DNA of 36,054 bases from Paraphysomonas bandaiensis. Lineage: Eukaryota; Protista; Chrysophyceae. Within the stretch, counting starts at the first letter, position 1. Every line of letters begins with the position of its first letter. Positions 133 through 20,606 of this stretch are shown here, one piece after another. Location: NCBI GenBank assembly GCA_965644295.1, contig CBFFRP010000353.1:1-36054 (forward strand). Reading direction: 5' to 3'. Made by a program: the position numbers and the translations under genes. Under the pieces are notes generated by a model. It saw only the letters and a program-made list of their open reading frames with translations, ran no database searches and was not told the origin of the DNA.

Positions 133-495
133 GGCGTTTGTAAAGCACTATTAATTGCAATGCCAATGATTTGACGCTTGATTATAAATATCTATTTTTA
201 TTGTTAGAATGTTAGTACGTTAGTACCTCTTACATTTAGATCAAAAGAAAAACCTCATAGGAAGTGTATTAACATGGAGATCTGATGATCTGTTACAAAA
301 TATTGGCTATTTGAAATATACACTCAACGTTCTTTGCGCTTTCTTTTTGTTCTACTCCGACCTCCGACACACTATATATACATACATACTGCATTATTAT
401 TAACAATATGAATTATTGACAAAGTGCACTTTTAAAATTAATACACACTTTTCAAGGCTACGAAAACTACGCCGCCAGCATCTATCAATTACTCA

Positions 496-692
496 TTTTT
501 TTATTGAAAGTGTTTTTATTTAGCAATAGGCGTTAAAAACTCGTTCCGATATAGTGGCTAGTTGAATGCTAGACCTACTAGTTAGACCTCTACCCATAAC
601 TAATTAGCACAAATTCTATTATCCTACTATTTAGCGCTACAGAAGCTGCTTGTGCGTCGCCGCAAGCACCAAGGTGCAACCACTTCCGCTCT
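496..692 (-). mobile_element. 3' end of a second copy of the short retroposon family (partial), ending in an A7 tail
   Basis: Reverse complement aligns to 1532-1713; 635-692 vs 1532-1589 match at 56/58. On the minus strand it ends GCCTATTGCTAAATAAAAACACTTTCAATAAAAAAA. No TSD found. Confidence 0.7.
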
Positions 693-1207
693 TAATGTTG
701 TTTGTGAGTTTCTCCCTGCTCGTGTGTCTTAGGACTGACTGGCGCGTGTTCAATTGTAGATAATATATATACCTAATATTGGCAAACTGTAAACTAAGAT
801 GAGATAATCATTGCTGAATGAGGGCTAGAAACTATTATATAGATTCATAGATTCTTCATACGCTCTTATATTGCTTAAACTGAGATATTGTTACTAAATA
901 TCAAAGTGTAAAGTGTAGTGAGTAAACCAAAAATTATTACACACTTGCAATCGATAGCAACATTTTGTGACATACAATATAGCTAACTCTTACATTTCGC
1001 ACTTCAGTAATTCTAATCGCCTGCCATCTAAAAGCTGTAGTCAAGATATTTAAATTATGACTGTTACTTGAATAATACTGTTTTTTAGTTAACAGTATTA
1101 TTAGAATCAATGTCATGAAGGCAGTCATATATAGTAGTAAAACAAAATATAAGATCATGATATATACTTCAGTGGTATGACAATATTGGTAGTAGAGAGT
1201 AGAGACA

Positions 1208-1296
1208 CCCTCAACAAAGTCGGACTCGCACCTTTTCGTGGTGTTCTGGGGGATAAGTACCGGAGAGATTCTCTCTGGGAAACTAACGTGAGCCGC
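1208..1296 (+). ncRNA. Candidate HDV-like self-cleaving ribozyme (Pr77/ingi-hallmark-like)
   Basis: P1 1208-1215/1243-1250 (6 of 8 pairs); P2 1221-1229/1288-1295; P3 ACC/GGT with 7-nt L3 TTTTCGT; P4 1260-1267/1271-1278; J4/2 ACTAAC with candidate catalytic C1283. Confidence 0.65.
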
Positions 1297-1414
1297 AAAC
1301 ATAGTCAGCAGATATTCTTCTGCCCACACATATAGCCGAATGCTTATGTGGTACAAGAAGGGACACCAATAAGTGTCACTTGTGTAGACGTCTTTGGGTC
1401 CTGACGAATAAACA

Positions 1415-1499
1415 GGCATCCGGGAATGGGCCCACCTCAAGGGCATCCGGGAATGGGCCCACCTGAAGGGTAACCGGGGAATTGGGCTGCCTGCTGAAG
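1415..1499 (+). repeat. 27-bp GC-rich tandem repeat inside the retroposon (2 near-identical copies plus 1 degenerate)
   Basis: GGCATCCGGGAATGGGCCCACCT(C/G)AAG at 1415 and 1442; degenerate copy from 1469. Confidence 0.85.
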
Positions 1500-2214
1500 T
1501 TAAGCATCCGAGATGTTCACCTTGAGAACTCAGAGCGGAAGTGGTAGCACCTTGGTGCTTGCGGCGACGCACAAGCAGCTTCCGTAGCGTGTGTACTGAT
1601 TAGTTACAGGTAGAGGTCTAACTAGTTTGTCTAGCATTCATCTAGCTACTAAGCTAGTAAGTTGGTGCAGGTTTTTAACGCCTATTGCTACTGTAATAAT
1701 AAGACTTTCAATATATGAGAGTAGAGACAACATTGACAGTGAATGAAAAGTGATGTTGATTATAATTTTATTATATCTATGTTTCTTATATATTATGTCA
1801 GCATACAGCATAGAGTGAAAGTCTTGTGTCTTTATTTCATATTTCTCGTCCGTAGGTTAAGACCAAGTATAGTAGTATAGAGTATAGATATATTTAAAGT
1901 CAACACAATGCAACACCGTTTGCTGAAGTGTTAACCTGAAACTTAAGGTATTACTCAGCCTATAGTGGCAAACTGGTTAGCTTATTTCGCCACATTAGCT
2001 TTAGCGTGGCGACTACATAATAAAACTCGTTACAAATTAATTACAAATTCAGGTTCAATAATGACGAGGCCTCGTTAAAATGAAAAATTTCTACTCCACC
2101 AATCAATTAATGATTGCAGAAATCATACATATGCAATGCATACACCAGCACCGTCAATTATAAGCGTTGTGTCTTTCTCTTTATAGACACAAAAACATCA
2201 ATTTTTTAGGATCT

Positions 2215-5200
2215 TCATAAACATCGTAACACATTCCAGCCGTATCTGGCAGTGTCATGCACTTTATTTTCTTTAAAGTCTAGACACTGAAGTCTTGGCA
2301 TTTCACAGCACTCACTGGGATACACAACATTATCAATAGCCCACTGTGGACCCCCAGAGTGTTGAACTTTCAAATTCCGCACTAATTTGTTCTTAACCAC
2401 TTTATCTCCGCCTTCAATACCATGTTCATTTTGTGGTGAATGATGTCTTGAAAAAATGCACGTGACTGCAAACGTCATGGGCACGCAACATCTTAACCTA
2501 CGGACGAGCAATCGAAGTACCCAATCATAATTAATACTCGCGGTTTCATTGCGTCCATTGTCACACGACGATACGCCCTGCGTTGGGAACAAATACACTT
2601 CACCATCGTCTCCAGCCGAAACTTCAAATAAATCATCCCCATCGAAATCGGAAACATAGAGTTGACCTTCGAAGTGCTTATACTTTACGCTTTTACCAGT
2701 TCTACGAACTCCGGATTCAATGCATTTCCTGAAATCTGGAAACCGGCGAAACTGCGAAAAAACATTACGCTCAGAGTTTATTTTCGTAGCACTACTGTCG
2801 GCAAAACTGTAACACTCAGAAGGTAACAAAGTAAGAGCAGCCTCAAAAAATCGAAGTAACGGGGGACCTTCTAAAATCATTTCAGCTTCAGATGTCCCGT
2901 CATTCACCGCAAAGCTAGCATACCACCATAGCTCAAAGTTTTCCGACCCTGGTGAACAGTTCCGAGAACAGGAAAATTCACACCTCAACTGTCTCGCAAT
3001 AGAAATCGCTTCACTGTTGGCAGAAGCGAAACACCTGCAGCATCTCATGTACACAGATATCTTCTTCACAGCAGAGATGTGACCACAAAGTGTCCACATA
3101 CATCGGTTTCGGTATCGATATATGTCAGCTATGGTAATATAAGGGGGAGGCAGTGGTATCGTAGACTCACTCAAAAGAGACATATCAGTACTATTTTTCA
3201 ACTCTTCCGACTGTGAAATATCCACAAGGGCACCGATGCCCAGTATATTCTCTACAACTACACAAAAGTTGTTCTTAAAACAAAATTCAAAATATGAAGC
3301 TTCCACGTACCAGCAAATGTGTCTGCCGCACCATCTAAATATAGACGCTTATTACTAGCAGAAAGTTTGAGATTAAAGTTGTGTAGCTGGACAACGAAGC
3401 CCACAAAGCACGATGCTGCCACATCGCTTAACATATAGACGTGGAGACTGTCTGTGTAGGACTCATCACGCAATACTATTAAAACCTTTTCTGAGGATAG
3501 TTTTCTTTTCTTGTAATTTCCTTTGTAATTAATCGTGTGACCACAATAATGACTTGCAGCTTCTTTACTATATTCCTTTCTTATGACCACTCCCTTGACA
3601 GGGGGTAGCAGCATTGACATATCAAGTGGCAAAGACGTGTCCGTCATCAATACCTGTCTTACCCCCAAGGGAGGAAGTCGTTTCGTTGTCGCACCCACTG
3701 CAGTCCTAGAAGCATAGGGATGAATGTGGGACCTTATGTAATCCGAAAATTGGTATATATTCCCGGTTCTCGTGTGCTCCAATTCAATTCTAGGCGGCAA
3801 ATTCAATTGACTTAGAGTAAATACTTCAGAGGCTGACAGAATAGCAAATACCACTGCACTCTGCTCATTGTGGGAAGGGTTTTTTTCAAGAAGTACGTAG
3901 GGATTTAATAATGCGACCAACAGATGAGGTGTCTTGTGTGCAGTGCAATGGGCGATCATATTCAGTACTTGGTTATCACATTTATCGTCAAGATGTGACG
4001 ATGAAGAGATAATCGCAACGGTTTTACATCCGGTTGAATCACATAACACCATAGAATAGAGGCCATTGTCATTGCAACAACCACCCACAAGAGTGCCGAC
4101 CACGAGGATAGGATGATCACATGTGTAAGTTTCATGGCGTATTTCAGACCGCTGAGTTGCCTCCACTAGAACACGATACAAAACGTCTGTCTGACTACTC
4201 TTACCCTTCCAACGGTAGGTAGCAACATTTTCCGCATATTGCCGAAGCATGCCACAAGTCCACACTTCTGGTAACAGAGAAGAAAGCCAATCAGAGTCCT
4301 GCCCTGCCCGGATAGCGTAGAGTGGACCATAGTCTGAGTCGACAAACTCCTCCACCAAATTGTAGGTAGGCGTGGAGAAGACTTCAGGCTTTGGAACAGT
4401 AAGGTCAATAATAGCCTGTAAGTATGAAGGCTCCGGAGTCGGCATCCCATGACGCGGCATACATTGTCCTATCTTTCGACAGGCATACGCATACCATGCC
4501 ACGAACACGGAGCACTTGTTTTCTAACATTGAAATGTCAGAGCAAGACATGCGGGTTATGGCTCTTTCTTTGGATGGGGCGAATTCTAGGAGATGACACT
4601 GTGAACGCACAGTCATAGCAAATCCATGAAGCCGGCCCCACAGGTATACGGGGTAAACTTCACGACACTTCACCCTGGCCCCGCGACGCAAACATCCAAG
4701 GACCGCATTAGGGAAACCTCCATGAGACGGGTATAGGAACAGGTTATCGCCACGACAATTACTGTCGAGTTTACCTACAAACTCTACCCATAGCAGCTGA
4801 TGTCCACTCATACAGCACCTCCACACCACACCAGTGATGTCAACAGCAGAGTGCATATATCCGTCTCGCAATGAAACTGATGGTGGGCGGAGATACTTCG
4901 GGTAAACCGCTGCAATCCGTTCCACTTGAAAGCAGTCATTTTGTGGTAGCACATCGGCTGGACATACAGGTGAATAATCTATACAAGCAGATACACTTCT
5001 TGTGTCGCTATTGCATAGAGCTGTCCAACGCGAAGACGAGATGATGCTGACAATATTTTCCCGAGAAAATCCACGGAAAGCGTACCAGGAACCACAACGC
5101 AGAAAAGGATGTAAGTGAGCCGCGTTCTTACGTATAATAACTAGTTCTTCCTCATAGTTTGCGCTGCAGCTACTGGCTTCATTATCATTCAATAGTTGCA

Positions 5201-5566
5201 CACGAAGAAATACTGTGTATATACGAGATCAGTGTTACATTGCACATCAAAATGATCCGACGTACCTGATAAAACACCATCTACTGAACAAGGATTGCTT
5301 ATACATATTATTCGACCAATAAACTGAACAGGTAAGGGCAATACGGGGTCTGTTCGAGGGCTCCTCTCAATATGCTTCCAAGCCTCTATTACAGAGCCAA
5401 TACAGCGACCGCTAATTGATACTTTAGCACCAATATCACATAATTGAAATTGGAAACCACGAGTCACTACTCTGATAATTTCATTATCACATTCAAGCGT
5501 TACACTTACATCTCTCCCTTTTGATAGTTTGATAGTCCCATGGTATTCTTTCTCTACAAATTTCAT
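2215..5566 (-). CDS. CTC1: CTC1-like CST complex subunit (multi-OB-fold telomere protein), ~1,080 aa
   Basis: Three ORFs join in frame through GT-AG introns 5213-5265 and 3258-3310. Motifs HPFLRCGSWY, LRRGARVKCREV…RSQCHLLEFAP and a C-terminal CxxC…CxxxC followed by AVNDGTSEA resemble CTC1 OB folds. The start may lie further up (ATG 5682 via intron 5579-5655). Confidence 0.7.
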
Positions 5567-5956
5567 CTTTATCAATGTCTTGTAAGAGATTATAGTATTA
5601 TATTAAAGGGTATTATAGAGATCATAGATAAGTGACTATATATACGATACTGTACTGATGTTAATGATACTACCAGATCCATATGCTTCTAGTCATCCAC
5701 TGGCAATGCCTCGAACAGCACTCTGTATGCAATTCAACACTCACACTTCGAAGTGTGGTTTTTGAATAACACCTTCATTCAATTTTCACCAATGAATATA
5801 TCTAACGCAATATTGATTGGATAAAATTTCTATATATTCGAAAATCCTATTTTTTATTGGTTTATCCTGTATTTTTCACTGTATTTTTCATTGCATTTTA
5901 TTGATTTTTTCAGTTCTTTTTCAGATGTGTATGTGTGTATGTGGAGTGTTGTATAT

Positions 5957-5974
5957 CAGTAGGAATTCCTACTG
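5957..5974. promoter_or_regulatory. 18-bp perfect palindrome CAGTAGGAATTCCTACTG, candidate cis-element
   Basis: Perfect palindrome upstream of CTC1-like; 15 bp of it recur at 25266-25280 in a divergent promoter. Confidence 0.3.
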
Positions 5975-6837
5975 TGTAGTGTGACATGTTGCTGTTTGAA
6001 GATAAGATCAATGAGAGGGAATATACAGTACTGCAATGAGATGAGGTTGTAGTAGTATTCATTGATCATCTATTGAAGTAATGAATGAGTTGTTGTTGAG
6101 ATTACATCTTTCGACTATGTTAGATCAATATGACATGATTGATATTTCAATACATGATAAATAAATGACTCCTGCGTGTTATAATTCAACAGTTTGTATT
6201 AGTGCGTGAAAATCATGCAGAGAATAAAACCGTCGAGCCCGAGAGATCATTCACTTCTCAGATCTATGAGATGTACAGATTTTCATAGATTGGAGCACAG
6301 TGAGAGTGATAACAGAACTAATTGGTCTCAGATCGTGGGCGATCTCTGCCACAAGATAAATAGTGACGATGTGGCAAAGATATTACGTCCATGGAGTGAG
6401 GAATTTCCACCTCTGAAACAACGAACCGTTTCTGGGCAATAAACGATTTTGTAGAGGGCATATTTTTTATTGATACGTCAGTATTACCTTGAATTTCGAT
6501 ATGAATATTGTACTATTTCGATCACACTTTAGCTTATTATTTCACTACTGGCATGATAGAACTTGAACAGTATGTTAATATCATGCACTTTCCATCGAAA
6601 AATAATTAATCGATTTTTCTTGTTATACAATGAACAATGGATGAACTTTGAAAGGTGTCGGTTGTCATTGGCAAGTTAGGTGAGCCTCACCACCAAAAGT
6701 AAGTAATATACAAGGGTGTCATACTATTCATCTACTCGAAATATATTCCCCTCAACACTCAACCGTAATATTGGCATTTAAACTATGTTAAAATGTCATT
6801 GAGAGGAATATAGGGGTTGTTTGTATTTAAGATATAG

Positions 6838-6894
6838 CAGGGCTAGGGAACAATATATTGCAATACTATGTCTAGTATGCCCTAGCTAGCCCTG
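6838..6894. mobile_element. 57-bp hAT-type MITE
   Basis: TIRs CAGGGCTAG…CTAGCCCTG; identical 8-bp flanking duplication AGATATAG at 6830-6837 and 6895-6902. Confidence 0.8.
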
Positions 6895-7138
6895 AGATAT
6901 AGTATGTACATGTGCATAATTACAATTTCTAGTATACGTGCATTCCGTAGCCGTAGACATGTAATAGAAGGAATGTTAAGCATGTAGACTAGTAATATAA
7001 TTAAAATGAATGGCCAACAAAACAAATCACTGACTCGCTACTCATAACTACCAGTATCATGCTTATTCCGAGAGTATGTGTAACATTGTAGGCCACCATA
7101 ATAAGTAATCCCCCAGACACGACCAAAATATTCGTTGT

Positions 7139-9553
7139 CTACGCCACGATATCATTCACAAAACGGTCTTCAATCTGACTCGCGCGAAACAAACCATCAA
7201 TGTCCATCGCCTCAAATCGGTCAACAAAGGACTGAACCATCCCTGACGGCGTGGGCTCATATTCTCTGAGCTGGACATCAGATCCATCCATAACCATGTT
7301 CGGTTGAACAAGCAACTTCCTCGGCTCTTTCCTTGCCATTACGATACTTCTTAGATTCATCATATCTTCATTGACCTCGCTGTAGGTAGAAAACATGGCA
7401 CCACCGGCATGGACATCAGCAGTGGACTTATATACCTGCAGACGTAAGAGGAAGGCACCTATCGCTGGCTTTCCAACAGACTCAATTTTCGTTCGATCGA
7501 GTGCGATGTGAATATCTGGTTCACCATCAGCCCCTACAAATCTCTCGATAGACAGCAACCCCTCTCCGGCTTCAAGAAGCACGCGTAATATAACATACCG
7601 TGCATTCATGTGAGCCTGACGCCAGGTCTTCGTTTCAGGAGTATAAAACTCTAGCCCCAGGACACCAGCACGACACATGAGCAGCCAATTGATGTAAATT
7701 ATATCTGATTGCGCTTCGGTGTTAACATGCCCAAATACAGCAAGTACAGATGGCTCTAAACATAGATATATTCCGATGCACTCAGCGCGACATTCCTCGT
7801 AGTTGGATGCAATCTTTCCAAAAGTTGAGTCCCATGTAGAGTTTCTTTTGTAGACAGACAACCCGCCAACTTCGCCTGTCAGAGGATTTGTTACAGTTGC
7901 AAGGACCTCAGAATCTTCTTCTTGAAAGAGCTTTCCACTTCCATGCCCCAACAACTCGTGAATTCCTACCTGTTCAGAAATATATTAATTGAGAAGACTT
8001 ATGTCAAAAGTAATTACCTGAACTTCAAAGGCCTCCCCCATTAAAGATTTATATAGTTGTTGATCCTTTGGAAGTATAAATGACACAGGTTTGTCACCCG
8101 ATGCTCCGTATCCCGCCTTCAGTACATTGCCCAGTGACACATTTTTGAATCCCTCTCTCTGTCGGATATCGTCGTAATTAGGGATATTAATCCCAGCAGG
8201 GACTCCTGAGGAGCCGAAGGCGATAATATCAAGGCTTGTGAAATCCGGTCGAAGAAATTCATCTTTCTCGAACTCCTTTGGCCATGGCATCATAGTTAGC
8301 AATTGTTCCGCAGAGTCCACAAGGACCTAAAGCTACTATGTCACGCATTCATAAAACAACAAAGCAACATTGAAAGTGCCTGAAATTTCTTGGAAATTTC
8401 TTTGTTCACACACGCAACAAAACCCTCAAACTCGCCACGCGTTCCTGATGGGTCTCTATAGCTTTCAATAAACCCTATATAGCTTTCTACGGCAGGGCCT
8501 ATAGGAAGTAATATGGTCGTGTAAGTGGTAAACGCATAAGTAGTGAATGCATACTTTTGTCTCGTATCCAATAGCGCGACCCCTCTTTGTGCATTTCGAT
8601 GGAGCCTACTTCAAATGACCGTGCGTAACACTCAAGCATTCGAACTTGCGTATCATTTGCTGCATAACCTGCTCAGACAAAATGAAGCGATAATACGTCA
8701 GTGTAACGTCTACGTACGAGTGGCGTTGCGGAGGCACTCCGCCGCCCTGCGCATTTGGTCACAGTGGTCACCTCGTCGAATCTCAAACTCAAAACCCTCG
8801 AAAGTGTACTCAGAATCAAATGGAAATTCACCGGTATCAGAAGTGGTCAGTGCACTGGCTACGAGTACCGTGTATCGTACAGTCTCCGTCCCACCATTCG
8901 TCTGAACAGTTTTGAACAGGCGTGTGTTGTAGGGAGACAGCCCTATGGAGCCAAGAAACCGTCCAGCTACTTCCGCATCACGCTCCTCACAGTTTGCTGA
9001 AAAGTATGTTGTAATACCGTGGCGGCTACCAAGGCCAAGCTATTTCCATACAACATTAAGTATGCATCGAAAACAATATGGAACCTACTTGTCGGTGTCT
9101 GTGGGGTAAAGAATACATCCTCTCCACAGTCGCATCGAAGTATGTGTTAAATAGATCACTGTTCATGCAGGAGCAGGACAGGAATAGTTTTAAACGATCC
9201 TGTGGGACATCTGGGACAAATTTAGTGTCACCAAAAGATTTATAGTTTCCCATGTTTCCAAAAAAAGCAGCACACCAAATCATAATTCTACTAATTTCAT
9301 CCTCGGTGACACCCTGATTACGTGCTTTAGCCAATAAGACTTGCACTTTTTGTGCAGAAAATACAGATAGTAATAAACAAAAAATCGGAGCGGATTCCGG
9401 GGAGCATTGAGTGAGGCATATCAGGCTACCTTCCCAACTGGCCCTACCCAACCAATACGCATATAGCTTCTCCTGTGAAGTGAGTCCTGTAAATGCCTCC
9501 CGAGAATCTAAAGTGCAAATAGGAGTTGTCACAGGAATGATATGGTTTGACAT
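7139..9553 (-). CDS. DPP3: Dipeptidyl peptidase III (peptidase M49), ~719 aa
   Basis: HELLGH and EECRAE zinc motifs. Introns 9040-9088, 8669-8717, 8499-8554, 8327-8379 (GC-AG) and 7970-8017 give a continuous frame. Upstream in-frame ATGs at 9562 and 9691. Confidence 0.95.
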
Positions 9554-10153
9554 AGTAGGCATATCAGAGGTGGCATTGCTGCTACACAACTGGCACACAA
9601 TAAGCGGAAACTTGCTGGATGCATTGGAACCACCAGAGTCTTCATTGAAATCCTTTCGGATTCCACAACACGGACAAATATAACCCTTCATTAACACTCT
9701 GTATCTTTGTAAATACGTAACTTTAAGAATCACAACTTGATAACTAGACGTGAGGCTATATATCTATCTCGTATCCTGCATATGCTGCTATGTGCTACTC
9801 TTGTACAGGCCTCAATTCTTGTGGGTCAACAGAAGGAATAGCTACAACCTTAATTCCCTAAATCCCAGGTTTTTAAGGGGAAAGGGGTTTAGTACTTGTT
9901 TTTGCCATATGGAGTTCAAAATTTGTGTTTTGAGGATATGTGTTCGATTTGGACCTAAAATGTACAGTATTTTGGGATTCTTGAGGGGTTTGCTGCTGCT
10001 CGTGATAGCTGTTGGAACATGCGATGATGCATGTGGAGCGATACTACTGACAGCAAGGGAGTTGCAAGCAATGCATATTCCAACTAAATCCTGTGCTTCA
10101 GATACTTCCATCCCCGTTGCACAGATTATCTCTTTCTATACACCAGCGCAAGA

Positions 10154-11725
10154 ATGTCTTCAAGAACTAGTGCAATCTTCAGTCGCCTAAAAGTGGGTCC
10201 CATGAAGCGACTGTACAAGTACTACACACCGGAAGCTATTAACTTTGCAGGTTGCAGTGTATTCAAACTAGATCGGATGTTTACCTTAACAACGTATAGG
10301 GGGTGTTCCAATGGACTCATCCTTTCCTATTAAAAAGCTAAATATCCACCTAGACACTGAAGAAAATATCGAAATAGCCGTCGGAAAGGGTTTAAGCCTT
10401 AATTATATACGCGGAGATGGTATCCCAGAGCTAAAGGAATGGGTCCAGAATCATGTGAAAAGTATACACTCTCCCCCTTCTGATTTCGGTACATGCGTCA
10501 CAGTTGGGAGTACGGATGCTTATGCCAAGACACTCGCTTTACTTTCTGGCGACACCGTTTTATTCGATCAATATGCATACGGCACAGCTGTTGCAGCGTG
10601 TCGTACCTATGGGCGAACAGGCGTAGGCGTTAAAATGGACTCTAATGGCATGGTCCCTGATGACCTACGTCTACAAACACTCCGTGCTCGGGAAAATGGA
10701 TTGGATCCGGATATTGTCTACCTTGTTCCAACTGCCCAGAACCCAACTGGAGTGTCAATGAGTTCTGCTCGTAAAGAAGCCATATACCGTGTATGCCAGG
10801 ATCTGGATCTTTATATTATAGAGGATGATGCCTATTACTACCTTTATCATGGACAACAGCCTATTGATAGTGAAATCGAGGTATCATCTTTACCAGGGTT
10901 CCGTTCATTACCAAGGTAATATCACTTGCAACAGCACGATATATACATGTAACTGTTTTTCTTTCCCCGCTGCACAAGATCCCTTCTCTCTATGGATACT
11001 GATGGTCGGGTCATTCGTATGGATAGTTTATCTAAGTTCATCTGCCCTGGCATGCGTCTAGGGTGGGTTTCAGCTCCAGCTGCTTTCACAGAGAAGTAAT
11101 CTTGTACTTCGCGTATATTCTATTCTTATTATCGTTTGGTTTGTTAGATATCTTCTCCTTCAAGAAATGACAACGCAGGTGACTGCGTATGCTATGTTTA
11201 TTACTTTTCTGAGGTTAATGGTTATTAGTTTCCTTCTGGTTTGAGCCAATCCGCGTTCACGGCTATGTTAAAAGGATGGGGAGATGAGAAACTGAACTCA
11301 CACCTGCAGCATGTATGTGTCGTGATTTCTACAAGTATCCTTTATTTACCTAATTGCAGATTCAAGGACACTATTGCCGTCAGCGCAATGCAATGTGTTC
11401 CGCACTTCTTAGCCAGCTGGATCGGAAGAATGTGTCATTCGAGATGCCTGACGGAGGCATGTTCGTATTTTTATACTTTAGGGAAGGGTATATTAATATG
11501 TCATCGGAAGAGCTCTTTAAGGTTCTTGCCCGACATGGTGTAATCATTGTTCCTGGAGATGACTTCAAGGTAGAAGGAATAAGAGGGAATTTAAGTGCTG
11601 AACTTGCGAAAGATTCTGGTTCGCAACTGTCAGTACGTCTCTCATATGCTGCCGCACAGCCTGCAGAGATAGCTGATGGTGTTTCACGACTTGCTAAAGG
11701 GCTTAAGGAAGCTGCATCTCTGTAA
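10154..11725 (+). CDS. Class I PLP-dependent aminotransferase (2-aminoadipate/aromatic amino acid transaminase-like)
   Basis: INFAGGVP, PTAQNPTG, IIEDDAY, DSLSKFICPGMRLGW (PLP lysine), PDGGMF and RLSY motifs across five GT-AG introns; start uncertain. Confidence 0.9.
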
Positions 11726-12311
11726 ATTTTATTCATGTGTATAGCATTTTGCCTAATCGAACTCAGTATAATAGCTCTGTTCTGCCAGATTCTTTATTGC
11801 GAAATGCTTTTCGAATTTTTATTTCCGAGAAACTAATCCATCATTTCACTGCAATGCTTTTTAAAGCACGATTTATAAAGCATGTCTAAATAATTCAACA
11901 ACTGCACTACTCGGGTGATGCGCTGGCATGTTTTCACAATGTTAATTGGTAGATGTAGCTTGTTAACATTTCACTGATGTCAATCTACAATCTCTACTAT
12001 GTGTTTCGCTATTGTATATATTTGCTTGAGATACTGATAAAATGGAATGGTCCATACATACACATACGAACCTATCATATTTACTTGCTCTCAATGTGTC
12101 TGCATTGCCATCGCAGCATTGGTTACTATATAATACACAAGGATATGTAAAAGGATTCTAACAGGCAATTTCGAACTGAAATATACAACTATACTACAAT
12201 TTGGTTTCTGCCATGCATAAAAACAATAGAAAAGATAGTTGGTATATCGTACAAATTGAACGTTGCAGATTATTATTCCCTTTACAGTGACGTCCAAAAC
12301 AACCTTAATAT

Positions 12312-12859
<548 letters not shown>

Positions 12860-13207
12860 CGTTCTGTTCACCTCTATATATACCAGGGAAGGTAACTGCA
12901 GTGCCTGTGACACAAGTAATTAACCCTCTTCAGTTCTCGACAGCACTTCCTTCTCAATCATTTATGTGTGGATGAAAAAAAGCTGAGAGCATATCTTCAA
13001 TCGACAAACTGAATTTAATAAATGTAAAATTCATTATCTCAACATACGTTGTATTCCACTGTAGTCCTCACCAGCATTGCAGTTTGTGCCAAGTGTACCG
13101 CTGTAGTTGGGTGATATCATGCACCGCATACCGCAGCTAGCTACTGCTGTGCTGTTAAGTTGCAGAAGTCACATATCTAAAGCATCACAGTATTAACAAC
13201 AAACACA

Positions 13208-14204
13208 ATGGCTAACAACACCCGTAATTCGAGAAAGCTTGTGCTTTTTGATGTCGATGGCACACTTACTGCAGCTAGACAGGTTTGACTATTGGTTACT
13301 CAGATGCAACAAGCTCACAATGTTACAGGAAAGCACCCCTGAAATGAAGGATTTCCTCAAGAGATTGAGCGAGAAAGTGGTTGTTGGTATCGTTGGTGGA
13401 TCAGATTTAGTCAAACAGCGAGAACAAATGGGACAAAATATAACCAACGAAGTAGATTATAGCTTTTCGGGTATGAGTGTGTATATCTGTAAGGCACATG
13501 TAATCTACTGATGCAGAGAATGGCTTGGTTGCCTACAAGCAAGGGGAGCTAATCGGAAAGCAGGTATTATGGAATTGAGCTTTCCTTATATCCGTTATGT
13601 TACATTCCGCATTAGTCAATCGCAGCACATTTGGGTGAAGATAAAATCAAGGAAATCGTTAACTTTGTGCTGCGTTATATTGCTGATCTCGATATTCCTA
13701 TCAAGAGGTTTGTACCTTTTATTTCGAACGTATATTTTGAGATGGTACACCAGGGGTACATTTATAGAGTTCCGTGCGGGTATGTTGAATATCTCACCTA
13801 TTGGCCGCAACTGCTCCCGTGAAGAGCGCAATGAGTACGAAAAATTTGACCTGGTACGATCGCCGTTGTTTCGGAGGTTATATTTTATTGTGTTCCTTGT
13901 TATTTAGGAACATGGAATCAGAAGAGAGATGGTGCGCGCTATGCGGGAACGGTTCAGCGATATGGACCTGACATACTCCATCGGCGGACAGATATCCTTT
14001 GATCTCTTTCCCAGAGGATGGGACAAAACTTACTGTTTAAGATACATACCAGAAGACGAATATGATGAGATCCATTTCTTCGGTGACAAAACTTATGAGG
14101 GTGGGAATGATCATGAAATATTTACACACTCTAGAGTCATTGGCCATACTACTACTGGACCGGACGACACAGTCAGTCAATGTAAGTCCCTCTTCGGCCT
14201 CTAG
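13208..14204 (+). CDS. PMM: Phosphomannomutase (HAD family, PMM/SEC53)
   Basis: [21 protein letters not shown]…[25 protein letters not shown] and FFGDKT…GGND motifs over several short introns. Confidence 0.95.
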
Positions 14205-19272: not shown

Positions 19273-19530
19273 ATATGTCTTTTTTGTCAGAAGAGTGTGA
19301 AGTTGTGTTTTTGAGTCTGCTTTATTTGACGTGTTGTAAGCAGTGAGTTGGAGCCTCCATATAGCAGCAGGGAAATTCACTTTGATATGTAGCATCTCAC
19401 TATAAAATAAATACCTGTTATTTTATATAAAGTGAAACTGGATGATTAGTTACGAAGTTCTACAGAAATGGTTGATGGGAAAACATTCCACTTGGATAAA
19501 CAAGAATACGCTAGACTGTAGATTTGCATT

Positions 19531-19582
19531 CCCTCTGGACTCGCACCTTTTCGTGGTGTTCTGGGAAACTAACGTGAGCCGC
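19531..19582 (+). mobile_element. Deleted copy of the retroposon 5' end (ribozyme lacking P4)
   Basis: Starts CCCTC like 1208; 19537-19582 is identical to 1222-1296 except for loss of 29 bp between two TCTGGG microhomologies. Confidence 0.8.
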
Positions 19583-20606
19583 TTATATAGATGTATATTC
19601 AGCATTTTTTTTTCCCACTCGTACTTGAGTGTATACTAGATGATTTACATGAAGGATAAGGACTAATAAAATGACAGCAAGATATGTTTGAACAGGGCGT
19701 TAGCACCACATACATTTGCGTATCTTGCATAATATAGTTTGGTAACTATTCAGTTAATTTGATATTTTATTGAATACGTGTGCTGTATTCACGCGCTAAG
19801 AGATATACGTGAATCATTGAATCTTAATAACACTTAAAGCTTGAACATAATTCACTTACAAGTAGGAATTATAATTATTAATCTGGTGAACATCTGTTCT
19901 CAGTAACATATATTTATCATATGTTCACCAGTCACTCCTATATATCAGCAACTGAATTTACTTTCTCTGTAACTATATTCACCCTTTACACCATGTTCGT
20001 TTCATCTATTACACACTATTAACTTACTTCAATTGTATAGTCTATACCGCATTATAATGCAAAGAACTCAACACATACATGGCTACTAGGGAAAAGTGAA
20101 CGATAAAATATTGTAATATATTGTAAAAATAATGTAAAACGCAATATCCGGCAATATAGTTATTCTTAAGTAATCTCCCAATATATTACAATAGATTTGG
20201 TATGTAGTAACGATTGTACGTATGTATACATACCTACAAAGTGACAAGTACTTGTATATATAGCAAATGATAGTAATTATCAATCAATCTTCATTGCACA
20301 GTCTGGCATTTGGATATATTGCATGAAAAGGCAGTGTACCTGTCTCCACAAGTAGCCAAGGGTGTAAGTAGTATTTGTTTGGAAGTGTAGTGGGTTTGAC
20401 TGTCATGTGATCTTTATGATTAGTACTAAAAATGGAATGTATGCATGTATTCTTTATCATCTGTTAGATCTGTAATGGTATGATAAGTATGTAATATATG
20501 AACGTCTTGTTATTTTAGCAATATAGGCGTCAAGAATATGCACTAGAATGGTATTGTTAGAAAAGTATTTAATTTTACTATCGATAAAACCTTAGCTAAG
20601 CACCAG

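Follow-up and report, generated by a model that had tools for sequence, protein, structure and literature searches.

A probable HDV-like self-cleaving ribozyme at the 5′ end of a SINE-like retroposon of a marine protist

The retroposon, its copies and its LINE relative

The window, i.e. the whole 36,054-nt stretch of Paraphysomonas bandaiensis DNA analysed here, carries at 1208-1715 (plus strand) a single copy of a non-coding SINE-like retroposon of about 508 bp, made up of a ribozyme-like head, a body and a LINE-like 3′ tail ending in CAATATA. The copy is flanked by a target-site duplication (TSD): the 13-mer GAGAGTAGAGACA found at 1195-1207 is present in identical form at 1717-1729. The mechanical ORF list, and that list only, places an ORF over the element, on the minus strand (937-1572). 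With positions 1150-1700 as the query, dozens of matches at 84-92% identity were obtained in the genome, all of them starting at query base 56-59, which corresponds to window position 1208; with a longer query, the matches ended near 1715. Alignment of 29 copies revealed a sharp 5′ edge (CCCTCAACAAAG...), with homology starting at CCCTCAAC, and a 3′ edge reading ...AAGACTTTCAATATA. Each copy has its own TSD of 10-14 bp, which abuts the same first base of the element, and C1208 is counted as part of the element because no downstream TSD is followed by a C. The original prediction of a TSD-flanked element starting exactly at 1208 is upheld by these 29 copies and their abutting TSDs.

The genome, of 62.6 Mb, contains 762 sites with the core motif of the head (CACCT-NNN-CGTGGTG) and 13 with the reversed motif used as control. 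Head and body did not differ in conservation among the 29 copies, and we therefore make no claim of extra constraint on the head. One further match, on contig C428 (G000; ~3000-4420), is 100% identical to window 300-1750, flanks included: this is probably an assembly duplicate or a haplotig rather than a second insertion.

The tail of the SINE (1532-1713) shares 74% identity with the final ~190 nt of a LINE of about 9.4 kb that encodes APE and RT (contig C440 of G000, about 3935-13290, minus strand, L193+L199; 12-bp TSD AGTAATTCATAA). This LINE is young and is present in at least 40 copies at 98-100% identity. It starts with AAATTCTCTG... after its own TSD, and this 5′ end is multi-copy. Neither the covariance model R1 (see below) nor Rfam detected a ribozyme at the 5′ end of this LINE, the sole LINE family followed to its 5′ end, so that the head of the SINE is not common to the LINE with the nearest tail. 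The LINE also contains repeats of ~70 nt at about 0.7-0.9 kb from its 5′ end, and no RNase H was found in it by Pfam at E up to 0.01. A separate repeat of ~250 bp is present in the window at 502-750 (minus strand). Its 5′ edge is sharp, a first look gave about 2000 candidates, and its copies show 94-97% identity. It matches the final 244 nt of the ~9.4-kb LINE at 81% identity, has no ribozyme head and looks like a tail-only retroposon family.

Predicted fold of the head and its environmental class

At 1208-1295, the segments of the head follow one another in the HDV order P1-P2-P3-L3-P3′-P1′-J1/4-P4-J4/2-P2′ (nested double pseudoknot), all on the plus strand; the sequence, this order, P2, P3/L3, P4 and J4/2 are as drawn in the original prediction. 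The P1 5′ strand is CCCUCAAC (1208-1215), in which CCCUC pairs with the G run at 1248-1252 and AAC can pair with GUU at 1243-1245; C1208, the first base of the element according to the TSDs, is also the predicted first base after the cut. An unpaired linker, J1/2 (AAAGU, 1216-1220), comes next, as in the class members described below (xxxxAAC-AAA-...). P2 is formed by CGGACUCGC (1221-1229), with A1224 bulged, and its complement GUGAGCCG (1288-1295); it has 8 bp, one of them G-U, and its 5′ strand is aligned as P2 by model R1. P3 (ACC/GGU) and the 7-nt L3 loop UUUUCGU (1230-1242) belong to the invariant core of the class. The P1 3′ strand, GUUCUGGGGG (1243-1252), measures 10 nt versus 7 in the class. 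J1/4 (1253-1259) reads AUA followed by AGUA: AGUA was fixed by our search pattern and AUA fits two covariation rules that the pattern did not impose. The P4 hairpin, CCGGAGAG-AUU-CUCUCUGG (1260-1278), has 8 bp including one G-U.

J4/2, GAAACUAAC (1279-1287), holds the CUAA motif. The putative catalytic base, already placed at C1283 by the original prediction, is the C of this motif, after P4 and GAAA, i.e. the class-invariant C of J4/2; the catalytic C is found at the first position of J4/2 (PMC10879173), and we infer the role of C1283 by position only. P1.1 had been drawn as a G-U pair; the class rule that associates the third L3 base with the first J1/4 base gives instead a Watson-Crick pair, U1235-A1253. 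At the second P1.1 position, two identical pyrimidines face each other, as they do in most class members; in the SINE head they are U/U. Recurrent variants of the SINE head lie where the structure is not affected, namely at the P2 bulge (A1224G), in the loop of P4 and at a P4 pair that is either G-U or G-C, and the CCGGAG/CUC(C/U)GG stem is kept in all four recurring P4 variants.

The class itself was defined by scanning metagenomes with a pattern whose core was taken from the SINE head and from L1Tc, and in which P1, P2, P4, three L3 bases and J1/4 were left free; 118 stretches matched. Of 94 unique sequences, 71 carry, just upstream of P2, a stretch able to pair with the P1 3′ strand over 7-8 bp without mismatch, versus a mean of 8.4 and a maximum of 17 when P1 partners were permuted between loci. 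There are 44 distinct P1 3′ strands among these 94 sequences, and the first P1 pair is C-G in 42 and G-U in 21 of the environmental sequences. A MAFFT alignment of 61 heads placed the P1 5′ strand wrongly, owing to the variable length of J1/2, and was replaced by the permutation test and by an alignment, A2, of 23 length-matched environmental sequences. With the full pseudoknot structure, 96% of the cells of A2 are paired versus 36-46% with slid partners. P2 is 93% paired in A2, with compensatory changes in 7 of 8 pairs, P4 has compensatory changes in all 3 of its pairs, and P1.1 (third L3 base with first J1/4 base) is paired in 23 out of 23 sequences, with four pair types. These three elements are independent evidence; P1 was selected for complementarity in A2, so that its 100% pairing is not independent and only the permutation test counts for it. 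In 75 of the 94 sequences, the second positions of L3 and J1/4 are occupied by one and the same pyrimidine (U/U or C/C). In 84, the third base of J1/4 varies together with the N of GAAN, which is G where that base is U or C, and A where it is A or G. These two associations suggest tertiary contacts. Covariation, by which the original prediction proposed to judge the helices, is thus found in the environmental class for P1, P2, P1.1 and P4 and is missing from P1 of the sampled SINE copies, which is invariant.

The cut site of the class could be checked at dense tRNA arrays. In at least 14 cases, the P1 start predicted from complementarity alone is the base that follows a tRNA 3′ end given by ARAGORN; the tRNA-abutting loci number about 10 (L080, L081, L085, L099, L108, L122, L128, L129, L140, L152, L161), and three more sites (L062, the second in L085 and the second in L108) seem to be adjacent to a tRNA by arithmetic from the core position. 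The cut site of the class is independently validated by this coincidence. The arrangement is that of the theta ribozymes, which are located directly downstream of phage tRNAs and four of which cut in vitro (PMC10879173). Rfam searches at the tRNA-adjacent sites of L080 and L062, the only two such loci tested, returned tRNAs only; at L080:243-310, right after a tRNA-Glu, RF02682 scored 40 bits, below its gathering score of 44.

The pattern is held by seven IMG/VR viral contigs, one of which is the same contig as L099. Other class members are on contigs with ordinary eukaryotic genes, e.g. for Rad5 and Sec7-type proteins, and no RT was found in the ORFs downstream of the eukaryote-like members, which are ordinary host genes. 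One multi-copy eukaryote-like family on metagenome contigs (L063, L069, L091, L113, L131, L135, L139), with a J1/4 one base longer, has copies whose homology starts at the predicted +1 (the G of GCCGGAC, with G-U as the first pair) and whose flanks are unrelated. It is a second case where the 5′ edge of a repeat equals the predicted cut.

To relate the SINE head to this class, two covariance models were built from the 23 environmental sequences only, without this genome: R1 (P2, P3, P4) and R2 (P1, P3, P4). R1 matches the window at 1212-1297 (35.5 bits, E = 1.3e-8) and R2 at 1209-1297 (36.6 bits, E = 6.7e-8). The head has 23 core bases identical to those of the covariation-supported class, and it fits two class rules that lie outside the search pattern, i.e. 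L3 UU with J1/4 AU (a combination present in 18 environmental members) and A as third J1/4 base with GAA-A. The covariance-model search suggested originally was thus positive with R1 and R2 and negative with Rfam, which gave no match on the head at the gathering score or at E up to 10. The silence of Rfam weighs little because the eight class members tested also gave no match at the pattern-hit sites, even at E up to 1. As judged from these comparisons, the SINE head qualifies as a genuine member of the HDV-like ribozymes and very likely defines the 5′ end of the element, in agreement with the initial placement of an HDV-like module at the exact 5′ end of the retroposon. There is no tRNA next to 1208, the upstream sequence being the TSD and an AT-rich flank, and no Rfam family, tRNA included, reached the gathering score anywhere in the window; the predicted cut does not lie within 5 nt of a tRNA 3′ end, which is the criterion for theta ribozymes.

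The label 'ingi-type', which the original prediction had attached to the head, is not supported: the same core is present in 118 environmental stretches, among them tRNA-array ribozymes and viral contigs, the subtypes differ (UU/AU/A for the SINE head, CA/UC/G for L1Tc) and the LINE with the nearest tail has no such head. Sequence comparison indicates that the core is that of a broad HDV-like subclass, with L1TcRz as one canonical member, and that the Pr77 core is this class-wide core rather than a trypanosomatid signature.

Two other forms of the head were encountered in the genome. The window contains at 19527-19583 (plus strand) a solitary head fragment of 57 nt, in which J1/4 and P4 are deleted and GTTCTGG is joined to GAAACTAAC; no SINE body follows it and its R1 score is 23.2 bits. 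The other is a satellite derived from the SINE, which forms a tandem array at L046 (G000:C69:4500-8500); its units, repeated every 681 bp, are 99.6% identical, and each has a degenerate head with a differing P1 5′ strand.

The P1 helix and the possible function of the head

The spacer between GGUG and AGUA is 12 nt long in the SINE head; it is of 9 nt in 81 and of 10 nt in 11 of the 94 other class members, none of which has a spacer as long as that of the head. The P1 3′ strand of the head exceeds those of all other members by 2-3 nt, and models R1 and R2 each insert 3 nt (cug) there. Because of this long spacer, P1 must carry either a bulge or a 4-nt linker to P3. Several registers were compared. 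The one originally proposed (C1208-G1250, with two central mismatches and two Gs left over) is the weakest, at -5.7 kcal/mol. The CCCUCA/UGGGGG register, from C1208-G1252 to A1213-U1247, gives 6 continuous bp plus a 4-nt linker, at -8.7 kcal/mol, and is the one found in the unaided fold of ViennaRNA; adding AAC/GUU leads to 8 pairs with C1246 and U1247 bulged, at -5.9 kcal/mol. The form aligned by R2 has 7 bp with a 3-nt bulge and pairs C1209 with G1252, one base off: the element would then start at 1209, which is contradicted by the TSDs. According to the class rule, the partner of base +1 is always the base that immediately precedes J1/4. C1208-G1252 is the only register that satisfies this rule and places the cut at the TSD-defined 5′ end, to the base, the choice of register being itself guided in part by the known 5′ end.

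There is no P1 variation among the SINE heads: the same two P1 strands were read in all of about 65 heads from the genome, where the variant heads are mostly decayed copies, and no pattern-matching copy with the usual spacing of the class was found in the genome, save two SINE-head variants with shortened G runs. Since P1 is invariant among the sampled copies, its register is without covariation support in the SINE family, and cleavage activity is uncertain. P1 is best described, from its sequence, as a variant helix in which the G run would be paired with CCCUC and GUU with AAC, leaving 2-3 extra bases of the 3′ strand, at about 1246-1248, looped out. It had also been supposed that this particular copy may be weak or dead. 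The window head, however, is the family majority sequence (all 28 differences of the window copy lie beyond base 120) and the P1 'mismatches' are the family consensus; any weakness therefore belongs to the whole family.

On balance, we think it probable that 1208-1295 is an HDV-like self-cleaving ribozyme which heads a LINE-dependent non-coding retroposon. The SINE would be transcribed as part of a longer RNA, presumably by read-through, and its head would fold into the nested double pseudoknot comprising P1, P1.1, P2, P3 and P4. C1283 in J4/2 would then catalyse a cut 5′ of C1208, leaving an element RNA that starts with a 5′-OH exactly at the first base of the element. This RNA would be copied by target-primed reverse transcription, by a LINE reverse transcriptase recognising the shared 3′ tail (the ~9.4-kb LINE could be the partner), and this would generate the TSDs of 10-14 bp. 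Marine polyA metatranscriptomes include contigs with sequence of the SINE family (~1216-1596), and one of these contigs runs across the predicted cut site; as assemblies, contigs show no RNA ends.

The head could also be a relic or crippled ribozyme, of HDV-like descent, in which the extra bases of the P1 3′ strand abolish or strongly weaken cleavage; the head would be kept for RNA stability or for binding RT or a host factor, or be merely inherited, and the 5′ end would be set by the transcription start. The 12-nt spacer, to be compared with 9-10 nt in 92 of 94 class members, the 3-nt insertion required by both models, the modest -5.9 kcal/mol of the 8-bp bulged P1 and the lack of a difference in conservation between head and body in 29 copies all go in this direction, as does the finding that Pr77-type heads with helix defects are inactive or weak (PMC4035085). 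However, a family with this head has reached at least 760 copies, an uninterrupted 6-bp P1 (-8.7 kcal/mol) remains available with the cut exactly at the element start, and all catalytic-core positions and both class rules are intact, which leads us to regard loss of cleavage as rather unlikely.

Acting mainly as DNA, the head might instead be an internal promoter of the Pr77 type, which serves RNA polymerase II; its downstream element, CGTG, would fix the start at 1208, as has been reported for L1Tc, the fold being secondary or both roles coexisting. The same 77 nt of L1Tc are indeed both promoter and ribozyme, with CGTG at +25 to +28 (PMC4748587, PMC3383444), CGTG is present at +30 to +33 in the SINE head, and the SINE needs some source of transcription. 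Yet this position is off by 5 nt with respect to L1Tc, and CGUG is part of the L3/P3 core, equally invariant in the tRNA-array ribozymes and viral contigs, where a eukaryotic promoter element would be senseless; a mainly promoter function thus appears improbable. As for a chance resemblance, the 5′ end of an ordinary repeat lending itself by accident to an HDV-like drawing, it could be argued from the nested MFE z-score of the head, which is only -0.13, and from the absence of an Rfam match. But the z-score is uninformative because pseudoknots are beyond the reach of an MFE calculation, and the class members tested were likewise missed by Rfam. The match of independent covariance models at E about 1e-8, the 23 core bases identical to the class and the good P2 and P4 in the right places make such a coincidence hardly credible.

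If the head is, as we favour, a self-cleaving ribozyme, a more specific proposal can be made, which we put forward as tentative and somewhat doubtful: the SINE would have acquired its HDV-like ribozyme independently of its LINE partner, head and tail coming from separate sources, and the ribozyme would work with a non-canonical P1, bulged or slippable (three registers are possible for CCC against GGGGG). Were this true, the HDV fold would tolerate extra bases between P3 and P1, slippage might tune the amount of transcript that is cut, and the 'Pr77 signature' would be an ancient ribozyme core common to phage-type tRNA-processing ribozymes and to retroposons of distant eukaryotes. The long P1 3′ strand offers in any case a natural test of the tolerance of the HDV fold at the P3/P1 junction. 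That the Rfam models missed this HDV-like subclass in every member tested matters for ribozyme annotation and for the reading of Pr77 as a promoter element.

Comparison with known HDV-like ribozymes

The ribozymes of R2 and other insect non-LTR elements, of HDV and of CPEB3 share with the SINE head the nested double-pseudoknot order and the catalytic C in J4/2. For the R2 element, the role of the ribozyme is to free the 5′ end of the element from a co-transcript (cited in PMC4035085). Unlike the SINE head, these ribozymes have a canonical G-U first pair and a 7-bp P1 that abuts P3 directly, and no similarity to them was detectable, either in sequence or with Rfam models.

A second comparison is with the theta ribozymes (PMC10879173): the environmental members that adjoin tRNAs have the same core and the same helix order. 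The members nearest to the SINE head in subtype, with L3 UUU(A/U)CGU, J1/4 AUA and GAAA, lie immediately 3′ of tRNAs in arrays, some of them on IMG/VR viral contigs. Theta ribozymes process tRNA 3′ ends and have a G-U first pair and short P4 stems, whereas the SINE head stands at the start of a eukaryotic retroposon and has a C-G first pair, an 8-bp P4 and a longer P1 3′ strand. The drz-Mtgn-1 sequence printed in PMC10879173 differs from the class core.

Another parallel is L1TcRz/Pr77, found in L1Tc, NARTc, ingi, RIME and SIDER (PMC3185411, PMC4035085), where an HDV-like ribozyme likewise makes up the first ~77-90 nt of non-LTR retroposons, both autonomous and non-autonomous; L1TcRz is active in vitro (PMC3185411). 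Bases 27-77 of L1Tc clone 55, as rebuilt from the reverse primers in PMC3185411, read UGGUG-CCAGGG-UCU-AGUA-[hairpin]-GAAGCUAAG-[P2 3′ strand], so that L1TcRz fits the class core and rules in its primer-covered 3′ half; the L1Tc 5′ primer is CCCTGGCTCAGCCGG, with CGTG at +25 to +28 (PMC4748587). The parallels with Pr77 drawn in the original prediction (L3/P3, AGUA and GAANCUAA) are therefore real, according to these primers and to this CGTG. Both systems have their cut, predicted in the case of the SINE, 5′ of base +1, a C-G first pair (CCC.../...GGG) and the core CACCU-NNN-CGUGGUG, with AGUA before P4 and GAANCUAA after it. They differ in the P1 3′ strand, which in L1Tc has the canonical 7 nt (GCCAGGG) instead of the 10 nt of the SINE head, and in the relation to the autonomous partner: in trypanosomatids the autonomous LINE carries the same head (L1Tc/NARTc, ingi/RIME), while here the LINE with the nearest tail does not. 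The hosts are also distinct, kinetoplastids for Pr77 and a marine protist for the SINE head; a limited search of the literature gave no paper in which HDV-like ribozymes were connected with diatoms or stramenopiles. If our preferred reading holds, ribozyme-headed retroposons, known from insects and trypanosomatids, would extend to an abundant SINE-like family of a marine protist.
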